Assembly (NCBI RefSeq): GCF_006345805.1
Contig: NC_043010.1
Location: forward strand, 25,420,001 to 25,484,000
Direction: 5' to 3'
Origin: Octopus sinensis
Taxonomy: Eukaryota
Length of the DNA: 64,000 nt
A program made the translations under genes and the position numbers. The notes under the pieces are model-generated. The model did no database searches and was not told the origin of the DNA. It saw only the letters and a list, made by a program, of their open reading frames with translations. This document shows, piece after piece, positions 4,741-64,000 of this stretch (position 1 is its first letter; every line of letters begins with the position of its first letter).

Positions 4741-7355
4741 TCATCATCATTTAGCATCCGCTTTCCATGCTAGCATGGGTTGGACAGTTCGACTGGGGTC
4801 TGTGAAGCCAGAAGGCTGCATCAGGCCCAGTCTGATCTGGCAGTGTTTCTATGGCTGGATGCCCTTCCTAACGCCAACCACTCCGTGAGTGTAGTGGGTG
4901 CTTTTTACGTGCCACCCGCACAGGTGCCAGACGGAGCTGGCAAACGGCCACGGATGGATGGTGCTTTTTACGTGTCACCGGCACGGGGGCCAGCCGAGGC
5001 TGGCAATGGCCACGAACGGATGGTGCTACGTGCCACCAGCACGTGGGCCAAGCGAGGCTGGCAACGGCCATGAACGGATGGTGCTTTTTACGTGCCACCG
5101 GTACGGAGGCCAGTCAGGGCGGCACTGGCAACGGCCACGATCGGATGGTTTGCTTACTTGTCACCGGCACTGGTATCACAGCTGCAATTTCCATTGATGT
5201 TGATCGACTTTGATTTTGGTTCTGCTTTCTGATATCTGATTTGATTTGGTTTGATTTTGATTTTGATTTTGATTTTCACTTGCCTCAATGGTTCTTCACA
5301 AGTGGAGTTTCGTGTCCCAAGAAGGAAAGGTATGTATAAGTCGACTGGCTACATACCAGGTAGAGGCCACGGGTTATGGTCTCACTAGTCTTGCTGGGTC
5401 TTCTCACGCACAGCATACTTCCATAGGTCTCGGTCTCTAGTCATTTCCTTGGTGAAACCTGAAGTTCGAAGGTCGTGCTTCACCACCTCGTCCCAGGTTT
5501 TCCTGGGTCTACCTCTTCCACAGGTTTCCTCAACTGCTAGGGTGAGGCACTTTTGCGCACAACTATCTTCAGCCATTCTCGTCACATGACCATACCAGTG
5601 CAAACGTCTCTCTTGCACACCACAACTGATGCTTCTTAGGTCCAACTTTTCTCTCAAGGTACTTACACTCTGTCGATTATGAACACTGACATTACACATC
5701 CATCGGAGCATACTGGCTTCATTTCTTGCGAGCTTACGCATATCCTCAGCAGTCACAGCCCATGTTTCACTACCATGTAGCATGGCTGTTCGTACACATG
5801 CATCATACAGTCTGCCTTTTACTCTGAGCGAGAGGCCTTTTGTCACCAGCAGGAGTAAGAGCTCTCTAAACTTTGTCCAGGCTATTCTTACTCTTGCAGT
5901 TACACTTTCAGCATACCCACCCCCGTTACTGACTTGGTCACCTAGGTAGCAGAAGCTATCAACTACTTCTAGTTTTTCTCCCTGGAACGTGGTAGAAGTT
6001 GGTCTCTGCACATTTTCAGTGTTTATTGCTCCTGAGCATCTGCCACAGACAAAAACTATTTTCCTAGTTAGCCTTCCTTTGACATTGCTGCACCTCTTAT
6101 GTGTCCATAGCTTACACTTGGTGCACCTTATAGAGTTTCTACCTACACCTTTTTTACAGATCGAGCAGGGCCATCTACCTGAAGGCGTTTGTGATTGGTC
6201 TACCTTCCTACTTATTAGGACTTTGGTTTTAGCTAGGTTGATTCTAAGGCCCTTCGATTCTAAACCTTGCTTCCACACCTGAAACTTCTCCTCCAGTTCT
6301 GATAGTGACTCAGCAATTAGAGCAAGGTCATCAGCATAGAGGAGCTCCCAGGGGCATCCTGTCTTGAATTCCTCCGTTATTGCCTGGAGGACTATGATAA
6401 ATAGGAGGGGACTGAGGACTGAACCTTGGTGGACCCCAACCTCTACCTTGAATTCTTCACTGTACTCATTGCCAACCCTCACCTTAGTAGCACCGTCTCT
6501 GTACATGGCTCGCACAGCTCTCACTAACCATTCATCTATCCCTAGTTTCCTTATTGACCACCAGATAAGGGATCGGGGGACCCTGTCGAAGGCTTTCTCC
6601 ATGTCAACAAAAGCCAGGTACAGGGGCTTATCTTTGGCTAGGTATTTCTCTTGCAGCTGTCTTACCAGGAATATAGCATCAGTAGTACTTTTCCCTGGCA
6701 CGAAACCAAACTGCATCTCATCTAAGCTAACTCTCTCTCAAATTAGTTGGGCTATAACCCTCTCCGTAACCTTCATTACCTGATCCAGCAGCTTGATACC
6801 CCTGTAGTTATTTGTATCTAGGGCGTCACCTTTACCTTTGTAGCAGTTGACTATTATGCTGCTACACCAGTCATTGGGTATGACTCCTTCGTGTATCACC
6901 TGGTTAACTATACCAGTGACTAGGCTATAGCCGACACTACCAGATATTTTGAGCATCTCTGCAGTAATTCCTGATGGGCCTGGGGCTTTCCCTGTTTTCA
7001 TGCTTGTAATTGCCTTAACTACTAAGGAACTGTCAACTCGGATTGCTGGTCCCTCTGTTGGGTCGACATTCGGCAGACTCTCTTTATCCCATTCATTTTC
7101 CTCATTCAGCAACCGTTCATAGTGGCGTCTCCAAACCTCTCTCTTTGCATCCTCATTTAGCACAAGTGAACCGTCATCCTTGCGAACACATTTCTCTCCT
7201 ACCACGTCACGATTCTCTCTCACACACTGTCTTGCAACACGAAATGCCTCAAATCTTTCATCCTCACGGCGCAGAACATTGGCAAATTTTTTCTTATCTG
7301 CTTCCCCTCTGGCTAAATACACCTGCCTCCTAGCTTCCCTTCTGGCAGTCTGATA
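4741..7355 (-). mobile_element. 5'-truncated RTE-clade LINE: RT, PHD-like finger, 3'UTR hairpin array, (GAT)n tail, AATCAT TSD
   Basis: ORFs 6738-7358 and 5385-6716 are in one frame separated by a single TGA. RT motifs KAPGPSG, NYRGIKLL, QFGFVPG, DMEKAFDRVP, HQGSVLSPLLF, LLYADD. AATCAT flanks both ends inside a host repeat. Confidence 0.95.
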
Positions 7356-7428
7356 CAATCATAAATAAAAAATGAAATATGATTTTTAAAACATATAACT
7401 CGATTACAAAAAGTACAAAAATGAATAA

Positions 7429-9081
7429 TCTCTATATTATAATTCTGAAATGCGAAAAGTTTGTTTCTTTGTTTGTCTGGTTTTGGCATTGAGAATGGAT
7501 TAAAGGCCACTAGATCCCATCGGATTGACTCCAAAATTTACAGGGACGTGAAAAATGAGGTGAGGATGCGAGTGGGCTAGGTTAGAAATCACTATCTTAA
7601 AAGGTGTCGTTGCTAGGGCCAAAAACGTACTTTGACAAGTCTACTCTCATTCTTTTATGTATCTGTCTTCCTCCATCAATCACTCTCTTTCCTCCCTTCC
7701 CATCACTTTCTATCTATAACGTTGTTTCACAGCGTCTACTTCCCCTTCACTTTCTCTTTATAACGTCGTTTCACAGCGTTCTATATCTCCCCCTCCCCGC
7801 CTTCGACAGCGCTTTCACACTCTCTCTCTCTCTCTACGTCTCTCTGCATTCATAGAGAGAATTACCATCGCCACCACCACCACCACACAATCATGAGAAC
7901 AAATATTATGAATGAGATATTTATTGGGTTAATTTATATATGTGTGTGTGTTCTATATATAAATATGTATATATAATGTATATATACAAAGTGTAGTATA
8001 TATCTGTATTTATGTATATTAAACTTTTTAATACTTTTTGATAGTTATATATATTTTTAAAAAAATATAAATTAATTTTAATTTTAAATTTAAATAATTT
8101 AAATTTTTAAATTTTATATTTTATATATTTTGTATATTATATTTTTATTTTTATGTTTTGGTTTATGTTTTTCACTGTTTGATTTGCCTAATAGTGAAAA
8201 GGGGTCTAAATGGGGCTGGAAGGGGATTAAAATTTACAGGAGCGGGTGTTTAGGAATTCTCTGTTACATCAAGCTAAAAAATTTGCGCCAGCCTTTTAAT
8301 CCTCAATGTGTTGCCGTCCATGATGAAGAAGTTTTGAATGCTTGCCATGGTGAGTCTACTGTCGTGAGAAAGAATCACTTCAAAACTTGGTGTTTAGGAA
8401 TTTTCTTTTACATCAAGTTCAAAATTTTACGCCAGCTGTTAAACTGCCACTACGTTGCTGTCCGTCGTTAAGAAATGCCAGCCATGGTGAGTCTACTATC
8501 CTCAGATTCTATCCCTTCAAACTTTGCTTTCCAATATTTTTTTATTTTTATTCAGCTCGCAAGTTCGTCTTTCCCTTTTAAATGTTAGTGTTTTGCTGTC
8601 TGCCTTGAAGCAGACCTTTCCGTTGTCATTGCCTGATATTTATGAGTGATCTTTGAAAATATGTTTCTTTCTCAACTTACTCAAGATCTTTTGTTGTTTA
8701 TAAATGGGAGAGAGATAGATAAAGATAGAGTAAGAGAAAGCGAGGGAGAGTCCGAGAGAATGGGATAGTGAGAGAGAAACAAAGAGGGAGAATCATCATC
8801 ATCATCATCATCATCGTTTAACATCCGTTTTCCATGCTAGCACAGGTTGGATGGTTTGACCGGGTTCTGGGAAGCCAGGAAGCTGCACCAGGTTCCAGTC
8901 TGATCTGGTAGTGCTTCTACAGCTGGATGTGTGTGTAGTGGGTGTAGTGGGTGTTTTTTCGTGCCACCGACACAGGTGCCATTGGCCATGTTCGGATGGT
9001 GCTTTTTACGTGCCGAAAGGAAGCAACAGAAAGTAACAACCATACTCTTACCCGTGCATAGAGCAGGTCACCTTAAGCTAG
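7429..9081 (+). mobile_element. Non-autonomous Helitron-like element (A|TC ... hairpin-CTAG|T)
   Basis: Starts TCTCTATATTATAATTC after A and ends cccgtgcatagagcagg...gCTAG before T. Contains an internal ~165-bp direct repeat (8224-8500) and an RTE 3'UTR insert at about 8793-9015. Confidence 0.65.
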
Positions 9082-9361: not shown

Positions 9362-10850
9362 GTCATCATTTAACGTCCACTTTCCATGCTGGCATGTGTT
9401 GCATGGTTTGACTAAGAACTAGCAGGCTGGGAGGCTGCACCAGGCTCCAATCTGATTTGGCAAGGTTTCTACAGCTGGATGCCCTTCCTAATGCCACTCT
9501 GAGAGTGTAGAAGGGGCTTTCTATGTACCACTGGCATGGGAGCCAGTCAGGCCACACTTGAATGGTACTTTTTATGTGCCACCAGCATGGGTACCAATCA
9601 GGCAGCACTGGCATCGGCCATGCTCGAATGGTGCTTTTTATGTGCCACCGCTACGAGAGTCAGTGAGGTGGTACTGGAATTGGCCACTCTCAGATGGCAC
9701 GTTTTATGTGCCAATCAAGTGGCACTGGCATCAGCCATGCTTGAGTGGTGTTTTTTTACATGCCACCAGCATGAGTGCCAGTCAGGTGTCACTGGCATCA
9801 GCCAAGACTACAATTTCACTCAGTTCAACAGGTCTCCACGGGCACGGCATACTGGCCAATGACTGAAGGGTGTTTTTAAATGGGCCAGTTATGCAGCACT
9901 GGCATCAGCCACGACTACAATCTCACTTGGCTTGCCAGGTCTTCTCAAGCACAGCATATCTCCAAAGGTCTTGGTCGCTTGTCATTACCTCTGTGAGGCC
10001 CAATGTTTGACGGTCGTGCTTCAGCACCTCATCCTATGTCTTCCTGAGTCTACCTCCTTCACAGGTTCCCTCCACTGTTAGGGTGTGACACTTCTTCACA
10101 CAGCTGTCCTCATCCATATGCATCACATGACCATACCAATACAGTCGTCTCTCTTGCACACCACATCTAATGTTTCTTATGTCCAACTTTTTTCTCAGGT
10201 TGCTTATACTCTGTTGTGTGTGCACACTGACATTACAATTCCTGTGAAGCATATTAGATTAATTTCTTTCAAGCCTATGCATATCCTCAGCAGTCACAGC
10301 CCATGTTTCGCTGCCGTGTAGCATGGCTGTTCGCACACAGGCATCATACAGTCTATCTTTCACTCTGAATGAGAGGCTCTTTGTTACTAGCAGAGGTAGG
10401 AGCTCTCTGAACTTTGTCCAACCTATTCTTATTCTAGCAGCTATGCTCTCAGAGCATCCACCCCCACTACTGACTTGGTCACCTAGGTAATGGAAGCTAT
10501 CAACTACTTCTAGTTTTTCCCCTGGCATGTGATGGAATCTGTTTTCTGTATATTTTTGGTGTTTATGACACTTGTGCATATTCTACACACAAAAACTATC
10601 TTCCCAGTTAACCTTCCTTTGATATTGTGGCACCTCTTATGTGTCCATAACTTACACTGGAGTTTCTACCTATGCCTTTTCTAGATTGAGCAGGCCCATG
10701 TACCTAAAATGATTTGTGATTTCTCCACCTTCCTACTTACTAAGACTTTGGTTTTTGCTAGGTTAATTCTAAAGCCCTTCGATTCTAGACCTTGCTTTCA
10801 TACATGAAACTTCTCTAGTTCTGGTAGTAACCCAGCTATTAGTGCAAGGT
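9362..10850 (-). mobile_element. Degraded 5'-truncated RTE LINE (RT C-terminal part and 3'UTR)
   Basis: Fragments GEKLEVVDSFHYLGDQVSSGGG and RRLYWYGHVMHM, and the same 3'UTR ending in a gatgac tail. Confidence 0.85.
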
Positions 10851-15178: not shown

Positions 15179-15879
15179 TATGTATGTATGTATGTATGTA
15201 TGTATGTATGTATGTATGTATCTATCTATCTATCTATCTATCTATCTACCTACCTACCTACCTACCTACCTACTTACCAATCTATCTATAAATATCTTCT
15301 GAAAAATTAACAGGTATGTTAAATTTTTGATATTGACAAAACTCATTAACCTGTAACTACAGAATGCTGCTTATCTTAACTTTGCTTGTATTATGCGTCA
15401 TTCACATTTAAGAAGCTCAATAAGAACATAAACCGATCCAGTACCGATGCGACATCAGACCAAGAAAGATAAAGGAAGTCGACCGCCATGGGATTCGAAC
15501 TCAGCGCGTAAAGAGCCGTATCTAAATGTTGGACATTGTTATAAAAGCACAAGGCCTAAGGATCTTCTTGGCCGAGAGAGGGAGAGGGGGGATAAGATTA
15601 TGTGACGTTCATGCTTCTCTAAAAAACATAAGCAAAATGAACAAAACAGTTACAATCAGAAATCGAAGCCAAAGAAACCAGTCTCAAAATCAGGCTTGCG
15701 CGCGCACACTCACTCATATACACACAAACACTACACCCATTATGTGCATCTACACACACGCACACACACATAAATATATATTTACATATACACACAGTTG
15801 TACATGTGCATGTGTAGACACACTTCTAGATTCACATGAAAACAAATAAAAAATAAACAAATTAATAAATAAACAATTA

Positions 15880-16170
15880 TATTGACGTCATAGATTTTGA
15901 GGTTTATATTTTCGCAGAGAATGATGACGTAAAGACAGCAATAAACAGAACCACAACAACTCTCGGCATTAAGGTAGGCATCGCTGATGTCTTGATAGTT
16001 TTCTCTCGTCTTTAATCATGGACCAGCCTGAAGTATTGACCTGACTAATTAATACCAATTAATTAAACGGAGTAAAATTACAATCACCATACGCCTGTAG
16101 ACCGATTAAGTTTTTTTTTTGGTTCGGTATATTTTAATACTCTGTTGCTGTCTCTCCAAACTCGACAGGT
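15880..16170. promoter_or_regulatory. Possible CpG-rich promoter-like region with CRE sites
   Basis: TGACGTCA at 15883-15890 and TGACGTAA at 15925-15932, at the left edge of a CpG-retaining domain. A donor-like CAG|gtacgt lies near 16168. No associated CDS was identified. Confidence 0.25.
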
Positions 16171-26397: not shown

Positions 26398-26497
26398 NNN
26401 NNNNNNNNNNNNNNNNNNNNNNNNNNNNNNNNNNNNNNNNNNNNNNNNNNNNNNNNNNNNNNNNNNNNNNNNNNNNNNNNNNNNNNNNNNNNNNNNN
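26398..26497. other. Assembly gap (100 N)
   Basis: Run of 100 N, probably a placeholder of unknown size. Confidence 1.
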
Positions 26498-29999: not shown

Positions 30000-30826
30000 T
30001 GGTTAGTCTCGCTAGTATATCGTTATTTATATATTTTTATTATACTGTGACATGGTATTTTGACGTAGTCAAATTTTAAAATGGACCAGAAGATCTATAA
30101 AATAATCTGTGTGGATTATCATGGTTATTTATAGTCATATTAAATATAACAGTTATCTTTAATTTTTTTATTCCAAAGGTAACTGTGACTGCCGTTTTTA
30201 CGCAGTCAAATTTAAAATGGATCAACAAGGTCTATAACTGTCTCACACGCGCGCACGTACACGCACACACACACACACACGGACGGGCGGACAGAAAAAG
30301 AGAGAGAGAGACCTGATTTTTGTTAAATATACTGAAGAAGATTAATATTAAATTCTACGAGCACATCCTGCCCTTATGGTTCTCATATTGTTCGCTGTTT
30401 TACATATGAAAAGTAGATGATCGGAAACAAATTCTGTACTTGGAGCAGTTTGTTTCTTGAATTCCAGTCATAGGTTTTAAACTTTGTCTGTGGAAATGAA
30501 AAATGAGTAATAATGTATTGAATATCTACCAATCTATATATTTCAAGAACACAACTAATAGAAAATGCTGAACCAGAGTTTCTAGACAGACTCAGTCTCA
30601 TTTATTGAGTAATGAATCAAGTGAACAAAACAGTTTTGTATGTTCACCCTCTCCACCACCATTTCTTGTCAAAGTAGTCAGGTGCAAATTGCAGTTTTGC
30701 TGTTGACAGTTTAGAAAGAACTGGTACAAGGAGATATTCAGACTTTGTTCCATTTGAAAACGACCCACCAGATTCCTACCTCATATATAGAGTGGTTAAT
30801 TCATATTTCTGAAACAACCTGATCAG
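30000..30826 (+). promoter_or_regulatory. Candidate R3HCC1 promoter / 5' non-coding exon region; strong donor CAG|gtgagt at 30826/30827
   Basis: At the right edge of a CpG-retaining domain that ends near 30420. Contains a duplicated motif at 30044-30237 and a consensus donor. The TSS is not determinable from sequence. Confidence 0.35.
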
Positions 30827-34047: not shown

Positions 34048-34436
34048 GAAACTGAAAGAAGCCTGTCATATGTATGTACATACGTATGTACATACATGTG
34101 AGTGTGTGAACTCTTGTCATGACATCATGTGATGGTTGTAAATGAGCATTAGCTTCACAGAAGCAGTGTCATTTATTTCCAGTCTTCCATGAAGACATAT
34201 CGGGCCATGGGGAAATGTTAGCTTGCTTAGAATCTGTTGAGGTTTAATGGCAGGAAGGTCTTAACAAATTCTGTCTGACCTATACAAGCATGGAAAAGTA
34301 GATAACTATTTCTTTATTGCCCATAGGGGGCTAAACATAGAGGGGACAGACAAGGGGATTAAGTCGATTATATTGACCCCCAGAATGTAACGGCAGATGA
34401 AATAATGGAAAAGTAGATATTAAAATGATGATGATG

Positions 34437-34474
<38 letters not shown>

Positions 34475-34505
34475 ATTTATCTGTCTTTCTGTTTGTCTCT
34501 TGCAG

Positions 34506-34618
34506 TACAGCCTGGCTATTTACGTAGACAACCGTTATCTTTCTGAGTCTGATAGTAAGTTTGTATCCCTTGTGATTGAGGAGCTTACCAACTATGCCAC
34601 AAATGCAGTGAAAGAGAG
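34506..34618 (+). CDS. R3HCC1: R3HCC1/R3HCC1L-family gene, first coding exon (N-terminal part of R3H region); probable CUG start at 34512
   Basis: Acceptor tctcttgcag|TAC and donor AG|gtaaga. Translates (YS)LAIYVDNRYLSESDSKFVSLVIEELTNY, resembling the human R3HCC1 N-terminus as I recall it ([29 protein letters not shown]). Phase-2 exit matches the next exon. Confidence 0.85.
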
Positions 34619-43140: not shown

Positions 43141-43600
43141 TACTCATATTCATCATCATCATCATCATTGTTTAGCATCCGCTTTCCATGCTAGCATGGG
43201 TTGGACGGGTCAACTGGGGTCTGTGAAGCTGGAAGGCTTCGTCAGGCCCAGTCAGATCTGGCAGTGTTTCTACGGCTGGATGCCCTTCCTAACGCCAACC
43301 ACTCCACGAGTGTAGTGGGTGTTTTTTACGTGCCACCTGCACAGGTGCCAGACAGAGCTGGCGAACGGCCACGAACGGACGGTGCTTTTACGTGTCACCG
43401 GCACGGGGGCCAGCCGAGGCTGGAAACGGACACGGACGGATGGTGCTTTTACGTGCCACCGACACGGGGCCAGACAGAGCTGGCAAACGGCCACGAACGG
43501 ATGGTGCTTTTACGTGCCACCGACACGGGGCCAGACAGAGCTGGCAAACGGCCACGAACGGACGGTGCTTTTACGTGTCACCGGCACGGGGCCAGGCGAG
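43141..43600 (-). mobile_element. RTE 3'UTR-only insertion with about five hairpin-repeat units
   Basis: Same 3'UTR and (GAT)n tail as 4741-5200. Shorter copies at about 8793-9015, 13040-13260, 13430-13655, 14200-14420, 14860-15050, 32510-32760 and 53200-53375. Confidence 0.85.
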
Positions 43601-44889
43601 AGGAAATGATGTGTGTGTCACATCATTTTCATTGCCATGTTACAGACCAGCTAAATGCCATTCTGAGCAAAGACAATCTCTCTCAGGAAACCGGTACAGA
43701 CCTAGTATCACTAGATCCTGCTTCTCAAACTTTTTTAATTATTACCTCCTAACGTTTTTTCAACACCATGCTTCGATTCAATAAAATTGAATACACAACA
43801 AAGAATTGCTGCCAACTTGATCACCACTAAAAAAATTCCACTGGTACAGAAGTTATTTAATCAATATACCATATTTTCCAGCACACAAGTTGACATAGCA
43901 CATGGTGTAAACATGTAGTGTAAACATTCAAAGATTATCTTTTCAAATCTGGCAGCATTTCACTTGGAATTTTTGGTCCTTCAAAGTTATTTTGATGTAT
44001 ATGTTGACCTACCTTCTTTTGGCTGTGAATTTTGGTCTGAAAAATTCAATTTGTATGCTGTAAAATATGGTATTACAGAATATCCAAACAAGATTTTGGG
44101 AACTAAATATAACCATATGATTAGCATACAGATTGAAGAGACTGAAGAATATTTTTGAAAATTAGGGCAGTTAAAAGTAGTTATTTGCTGCTCCTTCCCT
44201 CACTGTTCACTTTGTTTCCAGCTCACATACAAAATCTCTCCCCCACCCCCAGGTGGTGGCAGTAATGCCCACTTTGAGAAGCTTTACTTGACATGATCTC
44301 TTCTGCTGCTAGAACTAGCAGACAGATACTCTCCATTTCACACCTAACTGTTTTTCAAAAACAAGGACACAATGGTAATGTTATCCTGGCACATGAAAAA
44401 GATATGATGGTCATGACTGGAATGTCCTTGATCATAAGTCTTGTTTACTTAATCAAGGCTGACCTGTAACTACTTATTGAAAAAGTTATTCCTGATTCCA
44501 AATTCTTGAATATTTTCATGATTAATTGGAGCATACAAGCCATGTATTTCATTGGAAGGATAATGTTCCTTTATTCTTTTCAAATGTTTTATTTATTTCT
44601 CGTTCCTCAAATTCTGGACTCATACATTTTACGTCCCTTTTTTCAGTATTTCTGTGGCTGAAATGTTTTTTGAAAGCATAGTTGTGCAGTTGAGAAATCT
44701 TACTGTGTGGCACCTTGGGCAATTGTCATCTACTATAACCCAGGCCAACCAATGCCTTGTGAGTGAGTTTGGAAGATGGAGACTGTGTGGAATCCTATCA
44801 TGTGTGTGTGTGTATGCATGTCTTTTTCTTAGACTCCACAGTGCTTGACAGCTGGTGTTCATTTCAGTTCTATATTTAAGAGGTGAGGA

Positions 44890-50089: not shown

Positions 50090-50236
50090 GGTCCTCTTGT
50101 TCCCTCCATTCAACAGTTATTATCGCCTGTTAATACACAAAACTGTCGAAGCTGATTTTGACCAGCTCCACAGTTTCTCAATTGGCTCCGATAATCAACG
50201 TCGTACTGTTGTTTGTCGTTCAGACGCCATGCTGCA
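50090..50236 (+). CDS. R3HCC1: R3HCC1-family exon encoding the R3H domain core
   Basis: Acceptor ttttctgtttgcag|G and donor CA|gtaagt. Reads RVLLFPPFNSYYRLLIHKTVEADFDQLHSFSIGSDNQRRTVVCRSDAML, with the R-x3-H signature (RLLIH) and clear similarity to R3HCC1 VLLFPPLSSRLRYLIH...SFSVGEGWKRRTVIC. Confidence 0.93.
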
Positions 50237-52859: not shown

Positions 52860-53042
52860 GAATGGTATCAGTGAACCAATATCATCTGCAGGAAGTCGTC
52901 CCCTTAGGGGACGTGGTCGAGGTCGTTTAATACATCCAGTTAACAGCAGTGTGTTTAACAAGGAACCATTGCCAGTTGTCTTAAAGAACCAGAAAGATGA
53001 TGAGAAAATCAAATACTGTTCAGACTCCACAAATACATCAAG
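52860..53042 (+). CDS. R3HCC1: R3HCC1-family exon, RG-rich linker
   Basis: Acceptor ttcttattcctcaatttag|G and donor AG|gttaga, phase 2 in and out. Open frame NGISEPISSAGSRPLRGRGRGRLIHP...STNTSR. Confidence 0.8.
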
Positions 53043-54170: not shown

Positions 54171-55887
54171 AGCAAAGCAGAAAAAGCCTGAACAGCAGCT
54201 CTATATACCAAGACCTCGTCGTATAAAACAGCAGCTTTACCAGGATACTGACAACTATCAACAGCAGCAACAGCAGCAGCAACAGCAGCAGCTGCAGTAC
54301 TCTACTGAGGAGGAAGATGATATACGAAGTGGTCAAGCTCCCTACCAACATGAACTGTCATCAAGTCTATGCAACACTGGCCAGTCGTCACTGCCTGCTC
54401 GTAAAAACACTTCCAAAAACGGATGTAACCTGAAAAAAAATCGGCGTGAAGTGGAAATCTATGTGCCACGTGCCAAGCGCCAAATGCAGTTACAGAGTGG
54501 AGGAGGAGGTTTTGACGTCAGTTCAAAGAGCATTCCTCCTGCAGACTGTCGGGAACCCACCTCACCTTTAGACAGGATATCGAAAGATTACGACATAGAA
54601 TCTTTGTCAGTGAATAATAGTAATAATATTAATAATATGAATAGATCTGCAAGATGCCAGGATGCTGGTTGTGATATATATTTTCAGTTATCAAGATCAC
54701 ATCATGGTTTAGAAGGGTTTTCTCCTGGAATTAAGGACACTAACTCAGGAGTTCCTTGTAATTTTTCCAATAACGTTTCTCATAAGAGTGGCAAAGGTAA
54801 ACGTTATGAATATCATTGTAATTCCTCATCAGCAGATTTTGGCTATTCAGATAAAGACTCGCTGTCACCTTTGTCGTTGAAATCTCAATCGGTTGCTGGC
54901 AACCACGACAGAGAAAGCAGTTCATTCCACAGACCTGCTGCTGGTGCTGCTGCTGTTGCTATCCAAAGAACTCGATCTCCTGAAACAAGAGCCATTATCA
55001 ACAAAGTGTCGCGTAGGGATGGCATTAGCCAAGAAACTTCGAATCACAATCACAGCACTTCAATGTCTGCTCGAAAATACTCAAAAGAAGTTTCCCCAAC
55101 ACCCAACACTCTACAGAATACAAAAACCGATCTGTCGAGTGCGTTTTCTCCAGAATCTACGTGTGATTCTGACTCTGACATCAAATTGCCGAATGCGTTG
55201 TTTGTCCCCAGTAAAGACAATACACCTCTTGAGCCGTTCACCTTGGCTCAAGGAGATGAAGACCATCGGTCATCTGCTGGAAAAACTGTTCCAAATCAAT
55301 GGAATGAGAGTTCAGCTAGTGTGACAAGGGAGAGAACTCTGCCGAACGCAAATTCTCTAAGCACAAAACAACATTCTGACTCGACGAACTCTGAAAATGT
55401 CCATGCTCCTTCATGTGACCAAACAGAATCGGAAGAAAGTTCAGAAACAGAAGCAGACCTTTCTCAATCTCACCTAGAAAATATGAACAGTTCACAGCAT
55501 GACTGTAATTCTTCTAAAACTAGCATAAATGAAAGTTATAGCAATGCTTGTGAGCTTTCTACAACTGATCAACAACAGGAGTCAGAACTATCTTGCTCAA
55601 CAAACTGTGATTGTACTGGTTCAGGAGGTGAGAGCTCTTTGGACAGATCTTCTCCTTCTTCCTCAAAATTAGATCAGTGCGATGGTGATATGAATTCTAA
55701 ATTCAAAAGCAGCACTAAGACCACAACTACACCTAGTAATGATTCGACTTGTTCGTCAGAGAGTACAGCCAAAACAGAGAAGTTTTCTCCACAGATGGCT
55801 ACGTCTACAGCAGTTGTTGATGATGAGTCATGGGAGGCATTATATGATGACAATGGAGATTGTTTGGAACCTCAAGCTTTGGAAGAG
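54171..55887 (+). CDS. R3HCC1: R3HCC1-family large exon: two EJC-binding-motif-like segments, polyQ, long Ser/acidic low-complexity region, conserved SWEALYDDNGDCL motif
   Basis: Lies in the 604-aa ORF 54091-55905. Acceptor ttgcttgttgtag|A and donor GAG|gtaagt. Contains KKPEQQLYIPRPRR, RREVEIYVPRAKR and DDESWEALYDDNGDCLEPQALEE, typical of R3HCC1/R3HCC1L upstream of the C-terminal RRM-like domain. Confidence 0.92.
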
Positions 55888-58199: not shown

Positions 58200-59880
58200 A
58201 TCATCATCATCATTATCATCATCGTTTAACGTCCGTTTTCCGCGCTAGCACGGGTTGGACGGTTCGATCGGGGTCTGGGAAGCCAGGGGCTGCACCAGGC
58301 TCCAGTCTGATCTGGCAGTGTTTCTACAGCTAGATGCCCTTCCTAACGCCAACCACTCCGTGAGTATAGTGGGTGCTTTTTACATGCCGCCGGCACAGGT
58401 GCCAGGGGAGTCTGGTAGCGGCCACGATCGGTTGGTGCTTTTAACGTGCCACCGGCACGGAAGCCAGTCAAGGCGGCGCTGGCATCGGCCACGTTCGAAT
58501 GGTGCTTTTTACGTGCCACCGGCACAGAAGCCAGTCGAGGCGGCGCTGGCGTCGGCCACGTTTGGATGGTGCTTTTTATGTGCCACCGGCACAGGTATCA
58601 CAACTACTATTTCCATTGATATTTATTTCGATGTTCATGTACTTGACTCAATAGGTCCCCTCAAGCACAGCGAGATGTTCTGAAATCCAAGGTACTTTGA
58701 ATGGGCAGGGGCTATGCGGAAGTGGTGCAGAAAGCAGCCCGGGTCTTTGCAGTCACAGCATATCTCCAGAGATCTCAGTCCTTTGTCATTGCCTCTGTGA
58801 GGCCCAACGCTCTGAGGTCATGCTTGACTACTTCATCCCATGTCTTCCTGGGTCTACCTCTCCCCCTGATACCTTCAACTGTTTGGGAGCGGCACTTCTT
58901 CACACATCTCTCCTCATCCATCCGCAGTACATGACCATACCATTGCAAGTGTCGCTCTTGCACACCACATCTGATGCTTCTTATTTCCAGCATTTCTCTC
59001 ACGGTGCTTACCCTCTGTCGTGCGCGCACACTGACATTACACATCCAGCGGATCATGCTAGCTTCATTTCTTTCAAGTCTACGCATGTCCTCTGCAGTCA
59101 CAGCCCATGTTTCACTACTGTGAAGCATGGCAGTTCGCACACATGCATCATACAATCTACCTTTCACTCTGAGCGAGAGACCCTTTGTCGCCAGTAGGGG
59201 TAGGAGCTTTCTAAACTTTGCCCAGGCTATTCGTATTCTAGTGGTGACACTCTCTGAGCATCCACCTCCACTACTAACTTGGTCACCCAGGTAGCGGAAA
59301 CTATCAACTACTTCTAGTTTCTCCCCCTGGAGTGTGATGGAATCTGTTTTCTGAGTATCTGTGGTGTCTATTGTCCCTGTGCATCTGCCGCACATGAAAG
59401 CTATCTTATCAGTTAATTTTCCTTTGATGTTGCTGCACCTCTTATGCGTCCATAGCTTACACTGGGTACATCTTATGGAGTTTCTACCTACACCTTTCCT
59501 ACAGATTGAGCAGGGCCACCTGCTGGAGGGTGTGTGTGCTGAGTTTGCCTTTCTGCTTACTATAACTTTGGTCTTTGCTACATTTACTCTAAGGCCCTTT
59601 GATTTAAACCCTTGCTTCCACACCCGAAATTTCTTTTCTAGTTCCGGTTGTGATTCTGCTATGAGAGCCAGGTCATCAGCATAGAGGAGCTCCCAGGGGC
59701 AACCTGTTTTGAATTCTTCTGTTATTGCCTGGAGGACTATGATGAATAAAAGGGGACTGAGGGATGAGCCTTGGTGTACCCCTACTTCTACCCGGAATTC
59801 TTCACTATATTTGTTGCCAATCCTAACCTTGCTGACAACCTCTCTGTATAGGGCCTGTACAAGACAATCACTACCAACAT
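58200..59880 (-). mobile_element. 5'-truncated RTE LINE (second subfamily) with PHD-like finger and 3'UTR array
   Basis: 371-aa ORF 58775-59890 (HQGSSLSPLLF, LLYADD, WPCSICRKG..., GRGRPRKTW); (GAT)n tail at about 58200-58222. Confidence 0.93.
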
Positions 59881-61182: not shown

Positions 61183-64000
61183 TGACCAAATTAGACAAGC
61201 AGTAACGTATAAAATGAACGAAGCTGCAGCTAAAGAAGATAAGACAGAGGAAATAATTATAGACCAGCCCAGGGCTGATAAAAACGCAGTAAGGATTGAA
61301 AGAGTTAGTATAACTGATAGGCAAAGTGAAATACTAACTGAATCAATCATAACCACTAAGACAGATGAACATCAAATAGATGAAGAAAGTCACACAAATA
61401 TTGACCCAACAGAACTACATGAGCTGAAGAATCAAATCATGATTGAATGGTTGAAAATTAAAGAAGCCAGTATGAATGGACATGATACACTCCCTAAAAT
61501 CCGCAACTCTAACCAAAACAGGAAAATAATTGGTAAAATCCGCCTTGCACTTAAGGAGATAATTTCAGCTAATGATGTCGATATCACAGATCTCAACCAC
61601 CTGTACTATGCATCCGTGAAAATGTCAACGATTCTATCTGGTGAAAAGATTAGAAAACGGCAACATTCCCACAAAAAGCCTTCTTGGCAAGAGCGTATCC
61701 AACAACAAATTAAACTACTTAGCTCTGACATTGAATATTTGAAAAACCTTAAGGTTGACAAGACTACCAAACCTACAAAATGCAAAAAATTAAAGAAAAA
61801 ATATAATATGAAAACTATACTTGATATTGATGCCACCATAGAAACCATCAAGCAAAAGGTATCTGCTAAAGCTGCCCGCATAGCGAGGTATGAAAATCGT
61901 GTTAGATTCTTCAAGGACAACAACATGTTAAAAAATAACCCCAAAAATTTTTACAGGATGATAGGGAAAACACCAGTTACTGTAAAGTCTGTACCAGCAA
62001 AAGAAGAAGTGCAGGGATTTGGGAATAAAATTTGGGCAGAAGAAAAAACACACAACGAAAAGGCCCCCTGGATTGATAGAATATCTACAGAACTGGACTC
62101 CTTAGAAGAGCAAAAGTGGGAGGGTGTCAAGGTAGAAGATATAAGATCTGCTCTCAGGAGGTCAAGCAAATGGAAGTCTCCAGGAAAGGATAAAATTCCT
62201 AACTTCTGGTTGAATGCCTTCCCAGAGAGCCATGAACTGCTAACAGAACTTTACAATGATGTTTTGCAACACCCTAGTAGGATGCCTCCTTGGCTAGTTA
62301 ATGGGTTAACATTCCTGCTTCCAAAAAGTGAAGAAACAAATGAACCAAAAAACTATAGACCCATAACCTGCTTAACAACTATGTATAAAACGCTAACATC
62401 TGTCCTGACGGAATATACCTATAGTTTTTTAACAGACAGCAGCATATTCCCTAATGAACAGAAAGGATGTAAACGTGGATCCTATGGTTGTAAAGATCAG
62501 CTACTCATCAATAAGATGATCTTAGAAGATTGTCACAAATGACACAAAAATTTGTCAATAGCCTGGATAGACTATAAAAAGGCTTTTGATAGCCTACCAC
62601 ATAGCTGGATTAAGAAATGCCTGGAAATGTATAAAATAGCACCTACTCTGCGAAACCTTTTGTCTATAAGTATGAGATCATGGAGAACCACACTGACTTA
62701 GAACAGTGACATTGAATCTCTAAATGCTGGTGATGTAAAAATTTCATGTGGCATTTTCCAGGGTGACTCACTATCACCACTCCTCTTTTGTTTAGCCTTA
62801 ATGCCTGTCTCAAAATTGCTCAATGACGCACAGTACGGATATAAAATGTTGGATAAAAATATAAATCATCTCATTTACATGGATGATTTAAAGCTCTTTG
62901 CAAAAAATGACCAACAACTCAAGGGCTTACTAGCGATTGTTAAACAATTCAGTGATGACATCAGAATGCAATTTGGCCTCGATAAATGTGCAAAAGCTAC
63001 CTTTATCAAAGAAAAAATGACAGAAACATCTAACGTTAACCTTGACCAGCAGAATGTCATAAAAGAGTTAGACCCAGCGGAAAACTACAAGTACCTAGGG
63101 GTAATTGAAGGGGACAGAATAAGGCAATCAGTGATGAAGGAAAGGATCAGGAGAGAATGTTATCGCAGAGTAAGAGCAATACTCAAGACAGAGTTGAATG
63201 CGAGAAACAGGATCGAAGCAATCAATGCTTTAGCCATACCAGTCGTGCCTTACAGTTTCAATATCGTTAACTGTTCAATTACTGAAACATGCAATCTTGA
63301 CAGAAAAATATGAAAACTGTTGACAATGCATAGAATGCACCACCCTAAGGCAGATATAGAATGACTTTATCTGCCAAGAAAAGAGGGAGGCCGTGGACTT
63401 TTACAACTGGCAATAACAATGAAGATTGCTACAATTGGCCTAGACACCGACCTGAAAAACTCTGAGGACTGGATGTTAAAACTGGTCTCAAAACATGAAA
63501 ACAAGAAAACATCATACTCAGTAACAAAACAGGCAAAAGAATATCTAAGTGAATTCCGAATACAACAAATTTCGGAATTAGACATAGAAGAAACAAGCAC
63601 AGAAAAAGCTAAGTGCATGAAAACCCGTGCTAAAACTGCTGCTTTAGATATTTTGAATGATAAATGGCAAGAAAAACCTCTCTATGGCAAATACCCAAAG
63701 AGAGCGAATAGTGCAGATGTTGACAAAGCCCTGACCCATCAATGGCTAATGGCCTCTGGCTTAAAATCTGAAACAGAAGGGTTTATCATGGCAGCTCAAG
63801 ATCAATGCCTACCAACAAGGAACTACCAGGCCAACATATTAAAAAACGGCAGTAGCCCAACATGTCTTGTATGTCAACAACAAAATGAAACCATTGATTA
63901 TGTTGTCTCCAAGTTCAGTCTTCTAGTGCCTACAGACTATCTCAACAGGCATGATAGAGCTGCACAATATATTCACTGGGTAATTTGCAAAAACCTGGAT
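61181..64000 (+). mobile_element. R4/Dong-clade non-LTR retrotransposon, running off the window; single frame with four in-frame stops
   Basis: KSPGKDKIPNFWL, NYRPITCL, EQKGCKRGSYGCKDQLLINK, WIDYKKAFDS, FQGDSLSPLLF, YMDDLKL, HHPKADIE.LYLPRKEGGRGL, AAQDQ, decayed CCHC knuckle, RHD. Confidence 0.92.

Follow-up and report, generated by a model that had tools for sequence, protein, structure and literature searches.

We analysed a 64,000-nucleotide (nt) stretch of the Octopus sinensis genome (RefSeq assembly GCF_006345805.1, contig NC_043010.1, positions 25,420,001 to 25,484,000 of the forward strand). This whole stretch is called the window below, and positions are counted from its first letter unless another locus is named. 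The window carries the 5′ portion of an octopus gene, named R3HCC1L in RefSeq, which as the single invertebrate pro-orthologue corresponds to both R3HCC1 and R3HCC1L of vertebrates. Judging from the spliced reading frame and from its comparison with orthologous loci, translation of this gene very likely starts at a CUG codon at position 34512 instead of at an AUG. The CUG start is very probably ancestral in Bilateria, and not a mammalian peculiarity. The loci compared here point to one and the same start column across Bilateria, which would be occupied mostly by CUG, sometimes by GUG, with repeated lineage-specific switches to AUG.

The start region and the exons of the gene contained in the window are the following.

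34472-34505, + strand: polypyrimidine tract and acceptor tttatttatctgtctttctgtttgtctcttgcag of the intron in the 5′ untranslated region (5′UTR)
34506-34618, + strand: exon A, with two codons taken to be untranslated (TAC AGC), codons 1-36 (LAIYVDNRYLSESDSKFVSLVIEELTNYATNAVKE plus the AG of Arg36) and a phase-2 donor
34507-34516, + strand: putative initiation context aCAgc-CTG-GC, the octopus form of a T(-5)C(-4)A(-3)NN[C/G]TG-GC motif
34512-34514, + strand: CTG, proposed translation start, presumably decoded as methionine by the initiator tRNA
34594 (ATG) to 34611 (TGA), + strand: out-of-frame (+1) open reading frame (ORF) MPQMQ*, five codons long, which contains the first AUG after the CUG
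50090-50236, + strand: exon B, with the core of the R3H domain VLLFPPFNSYYRLLIHKTVEADFDQLHSFSIGSDNQRRTVVCRSDAML, joined in phase to exon A (AG+G)
50229-50231, + strand: ATG, codon 83 counted from the CTG, start of the RefSeq model and possible secondary start
52860-53042, + strand: exon B′, 183 nt, in phase, reading NGISEPISS...NTS plus AG and revealed by the RefSeq model
54171-55887, + strand: large exon C, AKQKKPEQQLYIPRPRR ... WEALYDDNGDCLEPQALEE; the later exons lie beyond the window

Exon A is bordered by a strong acceptor (ttgcag|TAC AGC CTG G) and by the donor AG|gtaaga, and its frame, TAC AGC CTG GCT..., translates as YS-LAIYVDNRYLSESDSKFVSLVIEELTNYATNAVKE. An intron of 15.5 kb separates it from exon B, in which the R3H core reads VLLFPPFNSYYRLLIHK...RRTVVCRSDAML. 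When exons A and B are joined, the Pfam R3H domain (PF01424) is recognised with E = 9.7e-12 over residues 24-79 of the CTG-initiated protein. In the spliced frame, the earliest in-frame ATG downstream of the CTG is that at 50229, codon 83, past the R3H domain. Translation from Met83 therefore leaves out R3H in its entirety. The original prediction, made from the octopus sequence, had described a frame devoid of in-frame AUG before codon 83, with consequent loss of R3H, a CTG with A at -3 and G at +4, and the short out-of-frame ORF at 34594. The spliced frame and the Pfam match bear out the first of these points, and the sequence bears out the two others, with A at 34509, G at 34515 and the TGA of MPQMQ* at 34611.

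Membership of the R3HCC1/R3HCC1L family is indicated by the N-terminal R3H domain of the CTG-initiated protein and by the basic motif P-[ED]-x-Q-[LV]-Y-[IV]-P-R, which follows R3H and is present at 54175-54234. Moreover, exon C is 100% identical to the RefSeq entry 'coiled-coil domain-containing protein R3HCC1L [Octopus sinensis]'. The C-terminal RRM-like region of the family (GFDIKWVDDTHALA...) is present in the RefSeq protein (P0152); the exons encoding it lie past position 64000, and none was found inside the 64-kb window. As to exon B′, its length is a multiple of three, with phase 1 at the 5′ end and phase 2 at the 3′ end, and it contains an RGRGRGR motif. It may be a cassette exon, as its skipping preserves the frame (CA|A).

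The RefSeq model of O. sinensis R3HCC1L comprises 824 residues, begins with MLQ|NGISEP... at ATG 50229, and has neither a Pfam R3H domain nor any other Pfam domain recorded. The CUG-started protein would have ~906 residues. The expectation that AUG-only gene models truncate the protein thus holds for the octopus gene, whose model starts at Met83 without Pfam R3H. The RefSeq gene range begins at the annotated ATG and is uninformative on untranslated exons.

In order to compare the start region with that of orthologous genes, two sets of loci were assembled. An initial protein search matched only ORF fragments of the R3H exon on eukaryotic contigs, and these contigs were searched with the exon A peptide. 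In every contig of this initial set, an orthologue of exon A was found 250-450 nt upstream of the R3H exon. A single-sequence phmmer search of the full library returned 205 relatives, including named gene models, and the genomic loci of six of them were retrieved. This search was preferred over a profile built from the ORF-fragment matches, since such a profile would drop the columns of exon A. Here again, an exon A orthologue preceded the R3H exon in every locus retrieved. Metagenome assemblies are the source of four of the comparison loci. The codon in the start column, preceded by positions -3 to -1 and followed by position +4, reads as follows.

Octopus: AGC CTG G
Chiton (Liolophura): AAG CTG G
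Sea slug (Plakobranchus): AAC CTG G
Scorpion (Centruroides): AAA CTG G
Crinoid (Anneissia): ATA CTG G
Amphioxus: AAG CTG G
L001 (metazoan, metagenome assembly): AAA CTG G
L002/L003 (metazoan, metagenome assembly): ATC CTG G
L005 (metazoan, metagenome assembly): ACA CTG G
Hemichordate (Ptychodera): AAA GTG G
L004 (metazoan, metagenome assembly): AAG GTG G

A phase-2 donor follows the start codon by 107-116 nt in 11 of 11 genomic loci, showing that the exons are orthologous. The start column is occupied by CTG in nine loci, by GTG in two and by ATG in one, a cephalopod complementary DNA (cDNA) described below. All 11 non-AUG loci have the favourable A at -3 and G at +4. As a control, the other leucine codons of the same exons and loci were counted: only 14 out of 103 (13.6%) are CTG, and the invariant Leu10 is encoded by all six leucine codons. 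If L001, L003 and L005 are taken as one lineage, the chance of seven independent CTGs at 13.6% each is ~1e-6. The alignment of bilaterian orthologues at the start codon, which had been put forward as a check of the original prediction, finds CTG or GTG and the surrounding context kept in molluscs, scorpion, crinoid, amphioxus and hemichordate. The accompanying proposal that CUG initiation predates the protostome-deuterostome split is supported at the DNA level, with CTG, A-3 and G+4 in three mollusc classes, scorpion, crinoid and amphioxus, and GTG in the hemichordate.

The nucleotides around the start codon are themselves conserved. The profile of the aligned loci holds 1.35-1.59 bits at positions -5 to -3, 0.96 bits at +1 (C/G/A) and 2 bits at +2 to +5, and falls to <=0.54 bits at -6 and beyond, where the sequence is unconserved. 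The conserved positions are T-5, C-4, A-3 and GC at +4/+5. C-4 is the third position of a codon that varies in its first base (TAC, GAC, TTC, ATC, GTC, encoding Y, D, F, I or V), and the codon just before the start column encodes S, K, N, I or T. A conserved C-4 beside a variable first base and variable residues argues that the constraint bears on nucleotides, not on the peptide. We consider it reasonably probable that the family has been obligately non-AUG since the bilaterian ancestor (>550 million years), with a dedicated TCA-NN-CUG-GC context that is lost upon a switch to AUG.

Coding conservation begins at the L/V/M-A of the start column, ahead of which the residues of different taxa bear no relation to one another. 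At the genomic level, eight of the 11 loci have an in-frame stop 3-26 codons upstream of the start column with no ATG between. In L005 this stop is a TAA at codon -4, located within the exon, with no AG between TAA and CTG. In most of the related loci an acceptor-like site precedes the start codon, the nearest one by 6, 6, 8, 8, 24, 25, 27, 40 and 72 nt, independently of frame. Exon A contains an in-frame ATG in none of the 11 loci, and +1-frame ATGs in nine of them. The earliest in-frame methionine is at codon 85-189 in 11 named taxa, always past R3H.

Evidence at the cDNA level was obtained from the closest relative of the octopus protein, P0007, which derives from two RNA-seq assemblies (L006 and L007). 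Over the C-terminal 207 residues, P0007 and the octopus protein share 78% identity, so that P0007 comes from another cephalopod. In these cDNAs, exons A and B are spliced together and the ORF (MAEYLFGQY...) has its initial ATG in precisely the column of the octopus CTG, 32 codons downstream of an in-frame TGA. This shows that exons A and B are coding in cephalopods, with the N-terminus at the CTG column. The TCA context is missing at this ATG (ttttgg ATG G in L006). The 5′ leader (1-141 in L006, 1-112 in L007) has upstream ATGs opening short upstream ORFs (uORFs), six in L006 and three in the shorter L007. One of these uORFs (MSCWSFPRFYFQPVLDG) overlaps the main start. When the 5′UTR of L006 (1-141) was compared with the window, only chance-level matches of 11-13 nt were found. 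A word-index protein search with exons A+B, exon C and the spliced N-terminus yielded no octopus transcript-derived protein; this is a weak negative, since the spliced N-terminus query missed the identical RefSeq protein and the search also missed P0007 despite a 12-residue identical stretch with the query.

The protein models of other species are consistent with the DNA data. The octopus LAIYVDNRYLS aligns at the vertebrate start column, with a one-residue gap before the conserved D. As anticipated from the human N-terminus, octopus L1 falls in the column of the vertebrate M/L start, and its codon is near-cognate. This column holds M in the coelacanth, goby and Xenopus models. It is read through as '..[VAF]T-L|A..' in mammal-like models and in several from frogs and fishes, the mammal-like ones having 'TL|ALLCLDG' through the known CUG. 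Invertebrate models show K/T/I/N/R-L-[A/D/E/G] at the junction, with mutually unrelated extensions upstream. At the protein level, locusts, mosquitoes, a mayfly and a nematode have the junction K/T/I/N-L-[A/D/E/G], and a nemertean model has T-V-A there. Three of the six Schistocerca RefSeq models and the Cloeon RefSeq model (P0171-P0173, P0031) are flagged 'partial' and start just upstream of K|L, which suggests that the pipeline found no ATG. Models of sibling insect species are padded with a GC-rich extension (MRAAVQRAAWPARPQ...), which is indicative of the same non-AUG start in insects.

Several observations weigh against initiation at CUG 34512. L001, L003 and L005 look mutually related, leaving ~7 independent CTG lineages rather than 9, and octopus has A rather than T at position -5. 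The start codon of the R3HCC1/R3HCC1L family is not invariant, and AUG starts do evolve: the cephalopod cDNA, Xenopus, coelacanth, some fishes and a nematode-like sequence all have AUG in the start column. The Pecten and Saccoglossus models begin at ATGs 2-3 codons downstream, and one lineage (P0008 cDNA, L004) has an in-frame ATG 6 codons upstream. No downstream RNA hairpin that might aid the CUG was found: exon A folds worse than its shuffles (z=+1.55), and a start-enhancing hairpin after the CUG was rejected on this basis. If the acceptor at 34505 were skipped, five in-frame ATGs located 73-87 nt upstream would enter the mRNA. Finally, 14 of the 40 best-scoring upstream donors would bring an ATG with an open frame, so that the octopus sequence alone is compatible with a canonical AUG in an upstream exon spliced to 34506, an arrangement to which we give little credence.

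According to this canonical scheme, an unannotated upstream exon, in phase 0 to 34506, carries an in-frame AUG, and the CTG encodes an internal leucine of a slightly longer protein. The strong acceptor of exon A makes the existence of an upstream exon certain, and ~35% of the strong upstream donors would give an ATG-open frame. Gene predictors have added extensions of this kind to the models of chiton, sea slug, scorpion, crinoid, amphioxus and locust. However, these extensions are dissimilar between taxa and begin directly after in-frame stops that the predictors spliced around. Moreover, the distance from acceptor to CTG varies from 6 to 72 nt without regard to frame, and the codon (CTG or GTG only) is kept together with the nucleotides at -5 to -3 where residues vary. 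In L005, the TAA at codon -4 lies within the exon, and in the cephalopod cDNA a stop stands upstream of a start at the CTG column. RefSeq found no upstream ATG though one would have added a conserved domain, an argument that concerns the behaviour of the pipeline. The P0008/L004 lineage truly has its ATG 6 codons upstream. P0008, which is cDNA-derived, and L004 (1265-1285) share M-I-S-x-x-K six codons before the L/V column, and this lineage seems to have gained an upstream in-frame AUG while retaining the old CTG or GTG. The upstream ATG of L004 overlaps an acceptor-like tttcag. Overall, a canonical start in an upstream exon appears improbable for the octopus gene.

The donor with the highest score in the 24 kb upstream (13.4 bits) is that after 30826.

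30797-30826, + strand: candidate end of a non-coding upstream exon, with an in-frame TAA at 30797-30799 and the donor CAG|gtgagt after 30826

With this donor, the TAA at 30797 would stand 11 codons ahead of the CTG with no ATG between, and the sequence is as originally described. It is the strongest candidate for the upstream exon, and it is stop-first in the CTG frame, bearing in mind that a ranking of donors cannot show use.

A second alternative takes the deposited annotation at face value. Translation would start at AUG 50229, the Met83 of the longer frame, and exons A and B would belong to the 5′UTR, as the remnant of an R3H domain whose production has ceased in octopus. The context of Met83 is indeed good (gacgccATGc). 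However, the frame is intact across the 15.5-kb intron, exons A and B together score as a genuine R3H domain, and the exon B protein is 59-67% identical to that of distant metazoans. In addition, the ancestral CTG is retained in octopus with C-4, A-3 and G+4, Met83 is unconserved outside cephalopods, and an out-of-frame AUG lies ahead of it. We therefore judge the RefSeq start very unlikely.

A third alternative arises from a repeat that the original prediction had overlooked.

34425-34471, + strand: (ATG)5(TG)16 compound microsatellite, in frame with the CTG and open, presumed intronic, adjoining the polypyrimidine tract

A start at the (ATG)5 repeat (34425-34439), with the acceptor at 34505 unused and the product MMMMMCVCV...LLQYSLAIYVD, would exploit five in-frame ATGs with no stop through the acceptor down to the CTG, but it is scarcely credible, given that the region is a di-/trinucleotide microsatellite, that a textbook polypyrimidine tract and a CAG acceptor come after it, that changes in (TG)n length would break the frame, that no similar repeat was found in any relative examined, and that RefSeq left it unused though the longest ORF would result. 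The repeat is relevant only in transcripts that ignore the acceptor at 34505. A gene predictor missing this acceptor could take the microsatellite as a false start.

Returning to the CUG start, initiation would occur at CUG 34512, after the first 6 nt of the second mRNA exon and behind a 5′UTR intron. The scanning 43S complex carrying initiator Met-tRNA would accept the near-cognate CUG through its context, C-4, A-3, G+4 and C+5, and the product of ~906 residues would hold the R3H nucleic-acid-binding domain within its first 79 residues. Ribosomes passing the CUG would meet the out-of-frame AUG at 34594, with its 5-codon ORF, and then the in-frame AUG of codon 83, which could at most yield an R3H-less product. 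In the original prediction, CUG initiation would tune the ratio of R3H+ to R3H- isoforms. The role of MPQMQ* as an interceptor of leaky scanners, as originally proposed, is mechanistically doubtful. Its stop lies only 146 nt of mRNA before AUG 50229, so that re-initiation is plausible and the short ORF would be more a delay than a trap. To judge from the human gene, the efficiency of the CUG may depend on the stringency factors eIF1, eIF5 and 5MP/BZW (PMC5714202). By the same analogy, eIF5 would be expected to raise the output, and eIF1 and 5MP/BZW to lower it.

CUG initiation of human R3HCC1, which the original prediction had mentioned, is published (PMC3105428; PMC5714202, NM_001136108). In mammalian R3HCC1, Ivanov et al. 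(2011) described about six AUGs lying out of frame and a first in-frame AUG that varies (PMC3105428). Tang et al. (2017) backed the CUG of human R3HCC1 by ribosome profiles and by reporters, with ~30% of the efficiency of a Kozak AUG, and found this initiation to be dependent on eIF5/5MP (PMC5714202). R3HCC1 is also among the annotated cases with ribosome-profiling support listed in a 2022 preprint (bioRxiv 10.1101/2022.05.02.490320). The CUG is conserved in mammals (PMC3105428) and the protein in vertebrates (PMC5714202), and R3HCC1 is outside the ten genes listed as non-AUG in all vertebrates (PMC3105428). No literature linking non-AUG initiation of R3HCC1 or R3HCC1L to invertebrates was found.

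The octopus gene and mammalian R3HCC1, including that of human, belong to the same gene family and share the start column M/L-A-L...D-x-x-[YF]-L-S with its CUG codon, apparently along with a purine at -3 and G at +4. They also have in common an R3H region without in-frame AUG, out-of-frame AUGs downstream and a first in-frame AUG whose position varies between species. Unlike in human R3HCC1, the octopus start would be located in exon 2, behind a 5′UTR intron, and the octopus gene has two out-of-frame AUGs (one short ORF) as compared to about six in mammalian R3HCC1. The human site has ribosome-profiling and reporter support, and the octopus site is proposed from sequence. The non-AUG start of R3HCC1 was known for mammals and vertebrates, and it is traced here to molluscs, arthropods, echinoderms, hemichordates and amphioxus. 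This is a deep extension of a known, conserved case of non-AUG initiation and not a new mechanism.

Two other genes invite comparison. As proposed for the octopus gene, a non-AUG codon is the sole start of the main ORF in EIF4G2 (NAT1/DAP5), where it is conserved across vertebrates (PMC3105428) and sensitive to eIF5/5MP (PMC5714202). EIF4G2 differs from the octopus gene in that it encodes an unrelated protein, uses GUG and not CUG, and has a conservation depth that is already documented. GUG initiation of EIF4G2 is also present in insects. The homologous start position of GTF3A is occupied by CUG in some lineages and by AUG in others (PMC5714202), and this is also seen in the R3HCC1/R3HCC1L family. 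However, the CUG of GTF3A is a mammalian novelty and AUG is ancestral, whereas in R3HCC1/R3HCC1L the CUG appears ancestral and the AUG derived (decapodiform-like cephalopod cDNA, some fishes, Xenopus, coelacanth).

Proteins that can be made only from a non-AUG codon are rare, and the majority of the cases on record are confined to mammals or vertebrates. The retention of CUG at one codon from octopus to human, together with its conserved flanks, argues that inefficient, stringency-dependent initiation is a selected trait. If the family has indeed been obligately non-AUG since the bilaterian ancestor, R3HCC1/R3HCC1L, a little-studied R3H/RRM-like protein family, would be among very few ancient genes whose entire output is tied to start-codon stringency (eIF1/eIF5/BZW). 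An obligate non-AUG start would also explain systematic annotation errors across invertebrate genomes. Models of this family are wrong in many invertebrates, being truncated (O. sinensis), lengthened by spurious exons (chiton, sea slug, scorpion, crinoid, locusts) or flagged as 'partial' (three Schistocerca, Cloeon). Lineages with CUG, GUG or AUG, some having the TCA context and others lacking it, offer a natural experiment on the efficiency of near-cognate codons.

Further upstream in the window, one region has features of a promoter.

15883-15973, + strand: candidate promoter and exon 1, with TGACGTCA (15883), TGACGTAA (15925) and the donor AAG|gtaggc after 15973; stop-first in the CTG frame

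It belongs to a cluster of cAMP-response-element-like (CRE-like) sequences, with TGACGT at 15603, TGACGTCA and TGACGTAA within 15883-15932, and a good donor after 15973. In scorpion, amphioxus and hemichordate, CRE-like elements resembling TGACGTCA are found 100-140 nt ahead of the start codon. One may speculate that the cluster at 15883/15925 and the donor at 15973 form the octopus promoter and a non-coding exon 1. In the metagenome locus L001, two inverted CCAAT boxes (CTGATTGGC / CTGATTGGCCAAT) are arranged in direct repeat at 9480-9545, 20-70 nt ahead of the CTG, which suggests a very short leader in that species.

The rest of the window contains a run of 100 N at 26398-26497, an assembly gap. 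On the minus strand, two adjacent long ORFs (450 and 206 residues) at 5388-7358 encode reverse-transcriptase-like sequence, and the pair looks like a copy of a non-long-terminal-repeat (non-LTR) retroelement. An interspersed repeat family is represented by two blast-checked copies, 4774-5170 and 43195-43749, which are 87% identical, and similar ORF text is found at 8860-9033 and 58249-58680. The copy at 43195-43749 contains internal tandem units of about 62 nt.

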